A DNA stretch of 63,981 nt, filler included, from Octopus bimaculoides (GCF_001194135.2; 4 parts of 4 records of this genome joined end to end with filler, not necessarily neighbours in it); one strand, 5' to 3'. Positions 49,297 to 53,209 are shown, counted from the whole stretch's first letter. Notes: generated by a model from the letters alone, not told the origin. Numbers and translations are program-made.

Positions 49297-49370
49297 CGCA
49301 TGCGCAACTCGAGGGGCTTCCGGTGGTGAAGTCCCCTGCGCATGCGCAGAATAGTACTTCCTCAATGGCG
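49297..49370 (+). promoter_or_regulatory. TATA-less housekeeping-type promoter (2x NRF1, ETS, YY1-like)
   Basis: CGCATGCGCA (49297-49306), perfect TGCGCATGCGCA (49337-49348), CTTCCGG (49317-49323) and CAATGGCGG overlapping the first ATG. CpG-rich patch in an AT-rich background. Confidence 0.65.
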
Positions 49371-49480
49371 GCTATAATTTCGCGCCACTACAAAGTATTC
49401 CAGCGCATCTCCCTTGCTATCCTCCGGGGTAACGCCTTTTCCATTTTGTCTGCTGGTGCCATGAGAAATGTTTCTATATT
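49365..49480 (+). CDS. Small protein gene, exon 1 (MAAIISRHYKVFQRISLAILRGNAFSILSAGAMRNVSI + TT; second in-frame ATG at 49461)
   Basis: Open frame from ATGGCG at 49365 through GCCATGA at 49461 to a TT|GTGAGT donor (49481). It ends in phase 2, matching the acceptor at 53058, and lies directly downstream of NRF1/ETS motifs. Confidence 0.68.
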
Positions 49481-50289
49481 GTGAGTGACAAGATTCTCCG
49501 TTAATGCTTCTATTTACACATAATCGCCTATGTATATCCCTTTCTTTTCTTCATTTTTTCCCAAATATTCTGAATTTCAATAGATTAAATTAATTTCAGA
49601 AAAGGAATTTAGAAACAAAGAGGGAAAGGAAATCTTTTCCTTGTTAGTTGTCAAGCTGACAGCTATGGACGTATGTCGGTTTTATTGTGTATCTCTAGGA
49701 AGCATAATCAAGCTCGAGCATGCATGATCGATCGACAATTTTTGTTGTTTTTCTGTCTTAATATCGAAAGAACTCTAAATCTTTTGGCCAGTAATAAATG
49801 GTCAATAAGAAAAAAAATATGATCTAAGGGAAATAACTTAGATAAACGAAAAAGGTTAGTGTGCAATGAGTTCTCACGTTTCTTTGAAAAAAAGAAATGT
49901 TATATATATCGGCATTATCTGTATTATCTATTGAAAGAAAATACAATCAAATACCTAAATTTACATAAATTCTAGCTCGTTTACGAGCTTAACTATAGAC
50001 TAAGTTATAACGTAACTCAAAACTAAACAAGAACTTAAATTTTGATGACACCGTATCAAAACAAAACTAACTCCGTCTTCTAAAGAGCTCCACGAAATAT
50101 CACCTTGAAAAATTAATAAGAAATCAACATGGCAAGGCGGCCCTTATCTCGGTTCACGAAAATTAATATCGGATGGTGAGTCTGTTTTCTAAGCTTCCCT
50201 TTCTCTCTGATGTGTGTCTACACATTGCACATTGCCTTGCATGCTTTGGCGATCTTCCATTTTATCTCGTATATTATTATTATTGTTAT

Positions 50290-50515
50290 ATAAGGTGGCG
50301 AGCTGACAGAATCGTTAGCACGCCGGGGGCAAAATGCTTAGCGGCATTTCGTTCATTTTTTACGTTCTGAATTCAAATTCCGCCGACGTCGACTTTGTCT
50401 TTCATCCTTTCGGGGTTGATAAATTAAGTACCCGTGAATTACTGGAGTCGATGTAATCGACTGGTCCCCTCCCCCACAAAATTTCAGGCCTTGTGCCTTT
50501 AGTAGAAAAGATTAT
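50290..50515 (+). mobile_element. tRNA-derived SINE family B; other copies at about 13000-13520(-, three), 21790-22020(+), 39210-39420(+), 42070-42280(-), 51200-51552(+, two), 52190-52350(-), 55740-55945(+), 61320-61515(+)
   Basis: Recurrent GGCGAGCTGGCAGAATCGTTAGC...TTCTGAGTTCAAAT...GTCGACTTTGCCTTTCATCCTTTCGGGGTCGATAAA...AGTACC...GGCCTTGTGCC with an (ATT)n tail. Confidence 0.85.
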
Positions 50516-50548
50516 TATTATTATTATTATTATTACTACTACTACTAC

Positions 50549-51172
50549 TGGCACTGTCATGGTATTAGCTGTCAGAAGTGAAAGTAGAAAAATCTGACAA
50601 GGAACGTTACTGCTGGTTTGAGTTGATTCTTTGGCTAATACCATGACTGGCCGGAGCGAGCTATCTGTCTGTCTGTCTCTATCTCTCTCTCTATCTATCT
50701 ATCACTCGAAAGTTATTGGAACAAATTTGACACCTATATCCATGCGTTTGAAAACACACAGAGTATAAGGGTACTACTAAAGCAGAGTGGTCCCGAACGC
50801 GCAGTCGCGCGTCCGTGCTAGCTAGTCGTGAGTGGTCGATCCTATTATTTTTAAACTTCAAACTTCATTTGTTTTCTATTTTGATAAATTCTCTCTGTTG
50901 AAAATTATATTTTTATATTTTAAATAATTTTCAATTTCAGAAAATATATTTTTATATTAAATTTGCGTTTTCTAATTTGATAAATTCTACGGACACAAAC
51001 AAAGGTGAACGAGTGATAGATAGATAGATATATATAGAGAGAGAGATAGTGAGATAGACAGACAGATAGATAGCTCCGGCTAGTCAGTAGCCAAAGAATC
51101 AACTCAAACCAGCAGTAACGTTCCTTGTCAGTTCTACTTTCAATTCTGACAGCTAATACCATGACAGTGCCC
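50549..51172. mobile_element. MITE-like element with about 160-bp inverted arms in the small protein gene intron
   Basis: 50550-50708 vs 51009-51171 are inverted (GGCACTGTCATGGTATTAGCTGTCAG... / ...CTGACAGCTAATACCATGACAGTGCC). Flanked by TAC inside a (TAC)n tract; it contains the foldback unit at 50770-50844. Confidence 0.7.
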
Positions 51173-51371
51173 TACTACTACTACTGTTATTATTATTTAT
51201 AGGGCGGCGAGCTGGCAGAATCGTTAACACGCCGGGCGAAATGCTTAGCGGTATTTCGTCTGCCGTTACGTTCTGAGGTCGATAAAGTTAGTACCAGTTA
51301 CGCACTGGAGTAGATGTAATCGACTTAATCCTTTCCCCCAAATTTGAGACTTTGTGCTTCCAGTAGAAAGG

Positions 51372-51409
<38 letters not shown>

Positions 51410-53058
51410 AGGCGATGAGCTGGCAGAATTATTAGCCCGCCGGATAAAATGCTTTGTGGCATTTCGTCCGTCTTTCAGCTGAGATCGACTTTGCCTTTCG
51501 TCCTTTCGGAGTCGATGAAATAAGTACCAGTTGCGTACTGGATCGATGTAATNNNNNNNNNNNNNNNNNNNNNNNNNNNNNNNNNNNNNNNNNNNNNNNN
51601 NNNNNNNNNNNNNNNNNNNNNNNNNNNNNNNNNNNNNNNNNNNNNNNNNNNNNNNNNNNNNNNNNNNNNNNNNNNNNNNNNNNNNNNNNNNNNNNNNNNN
51701 NNNNNNNNNNNNNNNNNNNNNNNNNNNNNNNNNNNNNNNNNNNNNNNNNNNNNNNNNNNNNNNNNNNNNNNNNNNNNNNNNNNNNNNNNNNNNNNNNNNN
51801 NNNNNNNNNNNNNNNNNNNNNNNNNNNNNNNNNNNNNNNNNNNNNNNNNNNNNNNNNNNNNNNNNNNNNNNNNNNNNNNNNNNNNNNNNNNNNNNNNNNN
51901 NNNNNNNNNNNNNNNNNNNNNNNNNNNNNNNNNNNNNNNNNNNNNNNNNNNNNNNNNNNNNNNNNNNNNNNNNNNNNNNNNNNNNNNNNNNNACAATGGA
52001 CTTCTTTCAGTTTGTGTCAACCAAATCCACTCACAAGGCTTTGGTCAGCCGACGTTATAGTAGAAGACACTTGCCCAGGTGCCATGCAGTGAGACTGAAC
52101 CTGGAACCATGTGGGAAGCAAGCTTCTTATTTCTTTACTGCCCACAAGGGGCTACACACAGAGGGGACAAACAAGGACAGACAAACAGATTAAGTCGATT
52201 ATATCGACCCCAGCACATAACTGGTACTTAATTCATCGACCCCGAAAGGCAAAGTCGACCTCGGCGGAATTTGAACTCAGAACGTAACGGCAGACGAAAT
52301 ACCACTAAGCATTTCACCCGGCGTGCTAACGTTTCTGCCAGCTCGCCACCTTGGAAGGTGGGAAGCCATCTGGGAAGCAAGCTTCTTACCACACAGCCAC
52401 TTTACAAGCATAAAACGAAAGCACCCTCCCGATCTTATTATTTTGCATGCATTTTTAGTCCAATATTTCCTTGTTTCATTTTTGTTAATTTTATGAAGAT
52501 TGACTTATCTAACATTTAATTGCCTGCCACACCTTGATAGTAAATTAATTTTCAGACATAGCTATAACTAAATAAACATTGCATAGCATAAGTCTGTGGT
52601 TGTTGTTTTGCTACTGTTCAGTCCTGGTAAATCAGACGTTCTAGTCGTGACCATCTCATTTGTGTAAAGGTACTCTGTTTAGATCCAATTTATCCCTAAT
52701 GCAGCAGATCTCTGATCCAGCTATGGCTACTCTGTGTATATGAACAGTAGAGAAGAGATTGGCCAATGTAGCCTTATTTAAGACAGTAGAGTGTGACTTG
52801 ATGAACACACAGCAGCTTTTTCTAGCAGATCGAATGACTGTGTAGAGGTTCCCTCATTGCTTTGCGTGGCTGACTTGTCAAGTTACAGTTAAAAGTATCA
52901 GCAATCAAGCTGATTTGATTTTTGACACTCTGCATGACAATAAAATATTCTATAATGCATCCAGTCATCCCTTAATAATTATGCCTACTAATAATGGAAC
53001 ATTTTCAGTGTTTGCAATTATTTTCAAATTATTTAAAATTGATTTTCTCTCTTTTCAG

Positions 53059-53209
53059 GGGTATTCTTGTTGTGGTTGGCATAACAAGTTTTGCCGTTGC
53101 CAGGACATTGGTTCAAAACCAGCGCTATGAAGTGATGAAGAGTAAACAGAGAGTTCGAGATGCCTGTAAACAAGATGTTTTGGATGCAGAGGCTAAAACA
53201 GTATCCTAG
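53059..53209 (+). CDS. Small protein gene, exon 2, terminal (L GILVVVGITSFAVARTLVQNQRYEVMKSKQRVRDACKQDVLDAEAKTVS*): single-pass membrane microprotein, possibly DUF4748-like
   Basis: Strong acceptor gattttctctcttttcag|G (phase 2), a hydrophobic stretch followed by a basic amphipathic tail, and TAG at 53207-53209. The family label is recalled from the SF.LA...RY..MK..R.R pattern and is unverified. Confidence 0.72.

Follow-up and report, generated by a model that had tools for sequence, protein, structure and literature searches.

The Octopus bimaculoides DUF4748 gene: conserved coding exons, a predicted NRF1/ETS promoter and kinship to the MR-1S proteins

On the evidence of its sequence, the locus described here represents the DUF4748 (PF15932) family in Octopus bimaculoides, and its conserved coding sequence is made up of two exons, 50129-50175 and 53059-53209, on the plus strand of the window (the whole stretch of O. 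bimaculoides DNA that was analyzed, 63,981 nucleotides, filler included). The reading that we consider probable as a whole is that this coding sequence yields a product that is MR-1S-like by homology, and that its transcript begins at a cluster of NRF1- and ETS-type sites further upstream; exon use, transcription start and localization in octopus are all predicted.

Identity of the locus and its coding exons

The gene was regarded as hidden in the preliminary description, in which an upstream exon (49365-49480, hereafter exon 1a) was joined to 53059-53209. In fact, it is already annotated as UniProt entry A0A0L8G7Z7 (A0A0L8G7Z7_OCTBM), an uncharacterized O. bimaculoides protein of 65 residues with the precomputed Pfam assignment PF15932, which was the only close match in a search of a 5.8-billion-protein collection. 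The window matches both exons of A0A0L8G7Z7 (50129-50175 and 53059-53209) with 100% identity. The second exon is therefore common to the annotated protein and to the 88-residue product of the earlier model and is truly coding, but the first exon differs, the annotated and family-conserved one being 50129-50175 (hereafter exon 1b) rather than 49365-49480, so that 49480^53059 is not borne out as the join in use. The exchange replaces the first 16 residues of A0A0L8G7Z7, which has no presequence, by 39. As a description of the sequence the earlier account was accurate, since both exons, their phase 2, the 88-residue product exactly as quoted and the NRF1 and ETS sites upstream are as given there, and the resemblance to DUF4748 suggested there is correct: PF15932 is assigned to the octopus protein and to all 47 of the profile matches that have a Pfam assignment (49 matches in total; one source names the domain DUF4748).

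Exon 1b (50129..50175, plus strand), the first exon of A0A0L8G7Z7, given as MARRPLSRFTKINIGW, is identified by its 100% identity to the N-terminus of that protein, by a family HMM and by the position of its intron. It opens with an ATG in the context aacATGg, codes for MARRPLSRFTKINIG and the TG of a Trp codon, and ends in phase 2 at a donor (TG|GTGAGT) with the best score among the candidate first exons. The second and last coding exon (53059..53209, plus strand, 151 nt), which is identified by 100% identity to residues 17-65 of A0A0L8G7Z7 and by the family HMM, follows the acceptor ttttcag|G, codes for the rest of the transmembrane helix and for a basic amphipathic helix (the remaining DUF4748 domain), and ends with the stop codon TAG at 53207-53209.

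The contribution of exon 1b is illustrated by scores against a family HMM built from 28 homologues, with the octopus sequence left out. Exon 2 alone scores 61.0 bits, and exon 1b adds a further 27.6 bits to give 88.6 bits for the 65-residue form, a result that bears out the suggested profile comparison with DUF4748. Exon 1a adds nothing to the score of exon 2, with 59.6 bits for the 88-residue product and 61.1 bits for the 56-residue form that starts at its second ATG. Exhaustive HMMER searches also gave homologue alignments that begin at query residues 4-7, i.e. inside exon 1b. With exon 1b, the octopus protein carries TKINIGW, its version of the K-x-N/x-x-G-W motif, where the helix begins; with exon 1a, the K-x-N-x-G-W motif is replaced by unrelated residues (MRNVSIL), and the HMM alignment begins only past this point. 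The phase-2 intron that interrupts the motif's Trp codon (TG|GTGAGT ... cag|G) is, by sequence comparison, ancient, with the same position and phase in six arthropod loci (Lutzomyia, Aethina, Diamesa, Vespa, Anabrus and Scylla) and in squirrel PNKD-S.

This intron (50176..53058, plus strand) is crowded with SINE-like repeat copies in both orientations (families D1-D3 and the inverted pairs I1-I13) and contains an assembly gap (N, 51553..51992), which cuts a repeat copy starting at 51406. The gap is wholly intronic and lies amid the SINE-like repeat cluster; no reading frame spans it, and the coding sequence is unaffected. The two sides belong together, in the order and orientation given: the join from 50175 to 53059 across the gap restores the conserved Trp codon (TG|G) and lifts the HMM score from 61.0 to 88.6 bits.

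The 65-residue product consists of a short basic N-terminus (MARRPLSRFTK), a single transmembrane helix (INIGWGILVVVGITSFAVA) and a continuous basic amphipathic helix with the R-x-E-x-M-K signature of the family, and all of the invariant family columns (G23, F27, R38 and M42) are present. Its best 19-residue hydrophobic window spans residues 12-30 (mean Kyte-Doolittle 1.99), the tail holds 8 R/K and 5 D/E, and the AF2 model is one helix over residues 8-64 (mean pLDDT 92.7). Like most invertebrate members, this form has no N-terminal cleavable targeting sequence, and the uncleaved N-terminus together with the helix would serve as a signal-anchor.

The promoter region and the upstream exon

The NRF1 and ETS sites that had been reported just upstream of 49365 are present. 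An NRF1-type palindrome pair (49296..49347), formed by ACGCATGCGC at 49296-49305 (one mismatch) and GCGCATGCGC at 49338-49347 (perfect), is accompanied by two ETS cores (49317..49361; CTTCCGG at 49317-49323 and ACTTCC at 49356-49361). The window holds three NRF1-type matches with at most one mismatch, compared with 0.16 expected, and none of 100 shuffles reached three. The pair is likely, as a prediction, to be a core promoter, and the ETS cores are predicted binding sites. These strong promoter motifs stand directly before the ATG of exon 1a and 780 nt upstream of the conserved ATG at 50129; for the model with exon 1b this means that either the 5' UTR is split by an intron and carries upstream ATGs, or there is a second promoter that has escaped notice.

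Exon 1a itself (49365..49480, plus strand) is an ORF of 38 codons plus 2 nt, with an ATG at 49365, a second in-frame ATG at 49461 (gccATGa), a frame that stays open to 49480 and a phase-2 donor (T|GTGAGT, with GTGAGT at 49481); its 116 nt and the 151 nt of 53059-53209 join in phase 2 to encode 88 residues. Its candidate roles are those of a 5' leader or uORF exon or of an alternative coding first exon, unless it is a chance ORF; it exceeds chance only moderately. In the reading that we favor, the transcript probably begins at the NRF1/ETS cluster near 49300-49360, and exon 1a is most likely its first, leader exon. It may be spliced to a putative acceptor at about 50086, upstream of which are found CTAAC at 50067-50071 (a branch-point consensus), a pyrimidine-rich stretch and an AG at 50084-50085. 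Exon 1b would then be an internal exon that also includes positions 50086..50128 (plus strand) as 5' UTR, and the ORF of exon 1a would end as a 48-codon uORF at the double stop TAATAA (50114-50119), in frame as read from exon 1a and 9 nt before the ATG at 50129. Alternatively, a minority of transcripts may join exon 1a directly to 53059.

The possibility that 49480^53059 defines a real extra isoform of 88 residues (or of 56, from the second ATG) with a cleavable presequence, exon 1b then serving as an alternative first exon that is transcribed from a separate start site, is one that we regard as unlikely, although several features speak for it. The 38 open codons end in the same phase as exon 1b at a GTGAGT donor, and only 2 of the 33 GTRAGT sites in the piece, that of exon 1a among them, follow a phase-2 ORF that begins with ATG and runs for 38 codons or more. 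Its ATG sits in ATGGCGGC, a sequence with a single occurrence in the 28-kb piece, 17 nt past an NRF1 site; the mammalian PNKD start codon likewise lies in ATGGCGGC, the squirrel start being GAACATGGCGGC. The N-terminal extension of mammalian MR-1S, which is encoded upstream, is cleaved (PMC3098736), and transcripts that start upstream would skip exon 1b because a first exon has no acceptor. The leader was described as a mitochondrial presequence, and it is indeed presequence-like in composition, being acid-free, basic and amphipathic (186 of 5000 shuffles had an amphipathic moment as good or better, p = 0.037), but it shows no conservation in the homologues compared and does not resemble mammalian presequences beyond chance.

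Against this isoform stand the loss of a motif that is conserved from a holozoan to mammals and the lack of any gain in family-HMM score. No counterpart of the leader was detectable in the homologues, and no leader-containing protein occurs in the 5.8-billion-protein collection. A candidate homology to the PNKD presequence, a SLAxLRG...ILSxGA match to platypus, was rejected, as 231 of 5000 composition-preserving shuffles (4.6%) equalled the best match to mammalian PNKD presequences and a mammal-only HMM aligned 0 leader residues. Furthermore, mammalian exon 1 ends in phase 1 rather than phase 2, the ATG at 49365 has a T at -3, and the composition of the leader is common in random frames, with acid-free 32-residue windows containing at least 4 Arg/Lys making up 7.5% of the random stop-free windows of the piece.

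An arrangement of three coding exons as in mammals, in which exon 1a and 53059-53209 flank a 39-nt micro-exon (50137-50175) to encode 101 residues, is the only in-frame, stop-free way to retain both the leader and the conserved motif, and it resembles the three exons of PNKD-S, the first two of which code for the presequence and GLAW. We nevertheless judge it highly improbable. The acceptor, caacatggcaag|G, is very poor: a hand count gives 5 pyrimidines in the 20 bases before it, as against 12 for the acceptor at 50086 and 16 for the one at 53059. The stretch from the CTAAC at 50067 to the AG of the micro-exon (50135-50136) also contains three other AGs. Moreover, the in-frame ATG 8 nt upstream, in good context and after a double stop, has the look of a true start codon, and invertebrate homologues with a named source start 12-15 residues before the Trp, like the 65-residue model.

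Exon 1a could also be a chance ORF beside the promoter of another transcript, in which case exon 1b would have a separate start site within the AT-rich sequence preceding 50129. Comparable chance ORFs do exist (one, for example, ends at 40505), TATATATA is found at about 49902, and such promoter motifs occur elsewhere nearby, GCGCATGCGC being present also at 46412 together with a minus-strand ATGGCGAC ORF. However, the presence within 190 nt of two NRF1 sites, two ETS cores, ATGGCGGC and a consensus GTGAGT donor, in the orientation of the gene, is hard to call chance, and inspection by eye gave no convincing minus-strand first exon beside the promoter cluster; this explanation, too, we regard as unlikely. 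A leader exon transcribed from the NRF1/ETS cluster remains our preferred account of 49365-49480.

The DUF4748 family, Tim10 and MR-1S

DUF4748 proteins are a widely conserved family of small, single-helix membrane proteins. Exhaustive HMMER searches gave 28 true homologues of 52-98 residues; the homologues are all named 'uncharacterized' in their sources. Members from molluscs, insects, crustaceans and mammals alike have the K-x-N-x-G-W motif. The family also has a mitochondrial genomic context: at seven independent loci (five insects, a crab and a compact holozoan genome), Tim10 comes after the DUF4748 gene in the same orientation, at a distance of 8-522 nt according to the coordinates in the tables. 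In Drosophila, CG42497 is dicistronic with Tim10 (PMC2276209; 10.1101/2022.04.24.489283), and it is listed as IPR031833/DUF4748 with the human orthologue PNKD, the entry 'dicistronic; Tim10' and a FlyBase GO term for the mitochondrion that is based on similarity to mouse Pnkd (supplement, 10.1101/2022.04.24.489283). The fly protein scores 76.5 bits against the family HMM and is like the octopus protein in its length (65 residues), its architecture and its lack of a presequence, with a start 12 residues before the Trp; the octopus position of the Trp-codon intron is common to the other arthropod family members examined (besides CG42497). In contrast to the dicistronic fly gene, the octopus gene has no Tim10 within the 8.5 kb downstream, and no Tim10-like ORF was found in 33466-61784, either by tblastn or by an HMM run against all six reading frames (best E = 1.3). 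A full-text literature search for DUF4748 or PF15932 by name returned no papers, the link having come via Tim10 and CG42497, and a PDB sequence search gave nothing meaningful (best E 0.68 for the 88-residue protein and 0.24 for the family profile).

MR-1S, the short isoform of PNKD, has been described as an assembly factor of complex IV and an interaction partner of PET100 and PET117 (PMC7582755, PMC7657662, PMC12870770); these properties, like a location in the inner membrane, are known for human MR-1S alone. Mammalian PNKD proteins of 142 residues carry PF15932 and score 41-52 bits against an invertebrate-only HMM, in a match that spans K-A-V-G-L-A-W, the helix and an R-x-x-M-K-A-R segment, and the phase-2 intron in the Trp codon is shared between PNKD-S (squirrel) and the octopus gene. 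Compared with the octopus protein, mammalian MR-1S has an N-terminal extension of about 70 residues, including a cleaved targeting region, which derives from exon 1 and the 5' part of a 169-nt exon 2. The first two PNKD exons are shared with a metallo-beta-lactamase isoform; such exons are absent from the octopus piece, and a PNKD-L-like layout with metallo-beta-lactamase exons downstream was rejected there after tblastn gave no match. MR-1S has been reviewed as vertebrate-specific (PMC7582755), which the family distribution seen in these sequence comparisons contradicts. The localization of mammalian PNKD-S is itself disputed, with a wide cellular distribution reported in one study (PMC3098736) and mitochondria in another (Ghezzi 2009).

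A mitochondrial role in the assembly of a respiratory complex, as the preliminary description had proposed, is supported as the best inference for the octopus protein, given that the family includes MR-1S. By homology, the 65-residue protein would sit in the mitochondrial inner membrane and act like mammalian MR-1S, as a small chaperone that may join intermediates containing PET100/PET117 at the stage where cytochrome c oxidase receives its COX2 module. Direct kinship to SMIM20 and human PET117 was not upheld (hhalign probabilities of 0.1% and 9.5%, for the family alignment against single hand-entered sequences), and PIGBOS1 gave no indication of homology either (5%, also against a single hand-entered sequence). 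Kinship to COX16, prompted by an R-Y-D-A-V-K-S-K segment, was rejected (0.7% against a hand-entered sequence), the R-Y-E/D...K-S-K resemblance being confined to 13 columns. PET117, PET100, COX16 and SMIM20, all of them single-helix microproteins of complex IV assembly, are like the octopus protein in general build (short N-terminus, single membrane helix, charged helical tail) and are analogues outside the DUF4748 family.

Implications for the octopus gene and its family

The present analysis corrects the account of this locus, in which the motif-bearing exon 50129-50175 had been overlooked in favor of an upstream presequence-like ORF. That 49365-49480 is a coding first exon read from a cap-proximal ATGGCGGC start, and that octopus thus makes both a presequence-bearing and a presequence-less homologue of MR-1S, seems to us doubtful. 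If it were so, the two forms from one locus would have a parallel in mammalian PNKD, with its upstream targeting exon, and would reflect either an ancient two-form design of the DUF4748 family or an independent reinvention in cephalopods. The family extends across molluscs, insects, crustaceans, a compact holozoan and mammals, with a conserved intron and a widespread DUF4748-Tim10 tandem, and fly CG42497 is suggested as a genetic model for the function of MR-1S. It is now possible to identify the octopus protein, hitherto uncharacterized, with MR-1S and CG42497 as its counterparts, and thereby to give it a testable role in cytochrome c oxidase assembly.

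Coding exons of the annotated gene

The sole match in a word-indexed search of 5.8 billion proteins was A0A0L8G7Z7 (UniProt, Octopus bimaculoides, 65 aa, PF15932), the sequence of which consists of MARRPLSRFTKINIGW followed by the product of exon 2 (53059-53209), and of which residues 1-16 are encoded at 50129-50175 (exon 1b, plus strand, ending TG|GTGAGT in phase 2), between the two exons that a preliminary description had joined. Exons 1b and 2 are 100% identical to A0A0L8G7Z7, which places the window in O. bimaculoides or a very close relative. The gene is not ‘hidden', as had been proposed: both the gene and its PF15932 assignment are in public databases, so the finding, as put forward, was known already. 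The observation itself is partly confirmed, and its interpretation partly supported. The upstream exon (exon 1a) runs from ATG 49365 through 38 open codons plus 2 nt to 49480, with GTGAGT after it; a second ATG in the same frame lies at 49461; exon 2 has the strong acceptor ttttcag|G and ends in TAG; and exons 1a and 2 join in phase 2 to give exactly the 88-aa product described.

The choice of first exon, however, was wrong or unproven, as the family-conserved first exon is 50129-50175. When the 65-aa protein was searched exhaustively with HMMER against 1.84 billion representatives, 28 true homologues of 52-98 aa were found; their alignments start at query residues 4-7, inside exon 1b, and display the motif S/x-K-x-t-K-(I/V)-N-(I/L)-G-W right before the hydrophobic helix. 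In the DUF4748 (PF15932) alignment the Trp motif is followed by G..SF and then by R-x-E-x-M-K in the tail. Against a family HMM built from the homologues with the octopus sequence left out, the 65-aa form (exons 1b and 2) scored 88.6 bits, compared with 61.0 bits for exon 2 alone, 59.6 bits for the 88-aa form and 61.1 bits for the 56-aa form that begins at the second ATG, so that exon 1b adds 27.6 bits and exon 1a none. The intron after exon 1b is in phase 2 and splits the Trp codon, as does an identically placed intron in Lutzomyia, Aethina, Diamesa, Vespa, Anabrus and Scylla (a crab), and in squirrel PNKD-S, the short isoform of PNKD. Among ATG-plus-phase-2-donor candidates in 47000-53058, exon 1b has the best donor score and exon 1a the third. 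Furthermore, ATG 50129 looks like the true start codon, given its context aacATGg and the in-frame double stop TAATAA that ends 9 nt upstream. The distance from Met to Trp is 15 residues in the octopus 65-aa form and 12-15 in other invertebrates.

An assembly gap (51553-51992) is intronic, so that none of the reading frames spans it. The intron is filled by SINE-like copies of one repeat in both orientations (50289-50545, 51198-51552 and 52188-52352), one of several such copies being broken by the gap; repeats of this kind are a common cause of assembly gaps. The two sides of the gap belong together: joining 50175 on the left to 53059 on the right restores the conserved Trp codon, and the score against the family HMM climbs from 61.0 to 88.6 bits.

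The upstream exon and its promoter

Although exon 1a lacks conservation in the family, its sequence is not plainly noise. It starts 17 nt after a cluster of NRF1 and ETS sites, where the preliminary description had correctly placed two NRF1 sites (GCGCATGCGC at 49338-49347 and, with one mismatch, at 49296-49305) and an ETS site, for which two cores were found (49317-49323 and 49356-49361). NRF1-type matches with at most one mismatch number 3 in the window, versus 0.16 expected. That promoters of this type characterize nuclear genes encoding mitochondrial proteins is established in vertebrates and assumed for cephalopods. Exon 1a opens with ATGGCGGC, its sole occurrence in the NC_068982.1 part of the window (33466-61784); this motif is the core of the TISU/YY1 element, which is frequent at genes whose 5' UTRs are very short. 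In squirrel, the start codon of PNKD lies within GAACATGGCGGC (locus L007, 2881-3012), which agrees fully with the TISU consensus, and has the ATGGCGGC core in common with the octopus upstream ATG. Exon 1a is one of only 2 among 33 GTRAGT sites at which a frame remains open up to a consensus donor of the required phase, and its peptide, which includes ISLAILR and GNAFSILSAGAMR, is acid-free and amphipathic (p = 0.037 versus shuffles). Four points speak against exon 1a: a leader-like composition is common (7.5% of random frames of the same part), its ATG has T at -3, the likeness of the leader to mammalian PNKD presequences is equalled by 4.6% of shuffles, and mammalian PNKD exon 1 ends in phase 1, whereas exon 1a ends in phase 2.

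Exon 1a may belong to any of three transcript structures. Were 49480 joined to about 50086, which is preceded by a branch-point-like CTAAC and a pyrimidine-rich stretch, the open frame could be a 48-codon upstream ORF, with its stop in the double stop at 50114-50119, 9 nt before the real ATG. The 88-aa form, with 49480 joined to 53059, is plausible if exon 1b is an alternative first exon. It is also possible that 49480 is joined to 50137, giving a 101-aa form (49365-49480, 50137-50175 and 53059-53209); no other in-frame route keeps both leader and motif, but this one relies on a very weak acceptor at 50137.

Several other elements were observed in this part of the window. A perfect palindrome, TATCGATA, at 49177-49184, some 120 nt before the first of the NRF1 sites, corresponds to the DRE motif of insect housekeeping promoters. 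Reverse transcriptase/retrotransposon-like ORF fragments were recognized by eye at 57185-58103 (minus strand) and 48513-48943 (plus strand), one of them just upstream of the NRF1/ETS promoter. Two adjacent plus-strand ORFs at 38188-38792 (HQDTARPH ... PYSPGIAPSNYHLF), which by eye look like a mariner-type transposase split into N- and C-terminal halves, are probably a decayed transposon. A third, perfect GCGCATGCGC at 46412-46421 adjoins GTCGCCATTTT, a YY1-like motif, and a minus-strand ORF starting with ATGGCGAC at 46394 (MATIYPSRPE...) runs into a CA microsatellite; a neighbouring gene on the minus strand may have its promoter and first exon here (46385-46425).

Relationship to MR-1S and the Tim10 neighbourhood

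For the 65-aa protein, the suggested resemblance to DUF4748 proved right. A profile search gave 49 family members, from gastropods (Nucella, Arion), many insects, crustaceans and eukaryotic contigs; all 47 with a Pfam assignment carry PF15932, which one source gives in full as ‘Domain of unknown function (DUF4748)'. The octopus gene is a DUF4748 member by every tested feature but the Tim10 tandem. With the human short isoform of PNKD as query, a search retrieved real mammalian 142-aa PNKD proteins carrying PF15932, which scored 41-52 bits against an invertebrate-only HMM over KAVGLAW|AIGF...KQMKARQNMR. In vertebrate PNKD, metallo-beta-lactamase exons share its first two exons; the octopus gene lacks them within 33466-61784. 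PET117, COX16, SMIM20 and PIGBOS1 are of similar build to the octopus protein, but no kinship was detectable in comparison with single sequences, including the suggested SMIM20 and PET117. The PNKD short isoform is MR-1S, which reviews and recent papers, all citing Vidoni et al. (2017), describe as a factor in complex IV assembly, associating with PET100 and PET117 at the joining of the COX1 and COX2 modules (PMC7582755, PMC7657662, PMC12870770).

A Tim10-type gene follows the DUF4748 gene on the same strand in Lutzomyia, Aethina, Diamesa, Vespa, Anabrus and Scylla, with a spacing, by tabulated coordinates, of 25-61 nt among the five insects; in the crab it is 522 nt. The DUF4748 ORF of a compact holozoan or metazoan contig has no intron, and Tim10 begins 8 nt after it. 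The tandem thus occurs in sand fly, beetle, midge, hornet, katydid, crab and this contig (coordinates internal to each locus: L001 6001-6747, L002 6001-6591, L003 6001-6695, L004 6001-6820, L005 10001-10845, L006 10001-16450 and L008 10001-10515), and an Anopheles gene model fuses DUF4748 and Tim10. In Vespa, a divergent mitoribosomal MRP-S35 gene lies about 195 nt upstream of the DUF4748 gene. The tandem is absent in octopus within the 8.5 kb downstream.

The same arrangement is found in Drosophila, where CG42497 (65 aa, IPR031833 DUF4748) is described as ‘dicistronic; Tim10' and assigned PNKD as its human orthologue; its FlyBase mitochondrion GO term is by similarity to mouse Pnkd (10.1101/2022.04.24.489283, bioRxiv supplement). 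Hayden and Bosco had earlier observed that the Tim10 mRNA carries a conserved ORF upstream (PMC2276209), and CG42497 was hemizygous lethal in a genetic survey (PMC11674832). Given the same tandem in seven loci, including the 8-nt intronless pair, the CG42497-Tim10 dicistron looks ancient and widespread.

Proposed function of the 65-aa product

The 65-aa protein is basic at its N-terminus and in its tail, with one strongly hydrophobic segment (residues 12-30), and its predicted structure is a single continuous helix over residues 8-64 (pLDDT 92.7). It is proposed to be an inner-membrane signal-anchored microprotein that acts like MR-1S in complex IV biogenesis, its gene being transcribed from the NRF1/ETS promoter. 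The mitochondrial assembly role first suggested is right as a probable role, through homology to MR-1S; the conserved Tim10 linkage in other animals provides independent support for a mitochondrial function. MR-1S is labelled vertebrate-specific in a review on factors of complex IV assembly (PMC7582755); the clear DUF4748 homologues in molluscs, insects and crustaceans, together with the same intron position, show that its characteristic domain is much older than that label.
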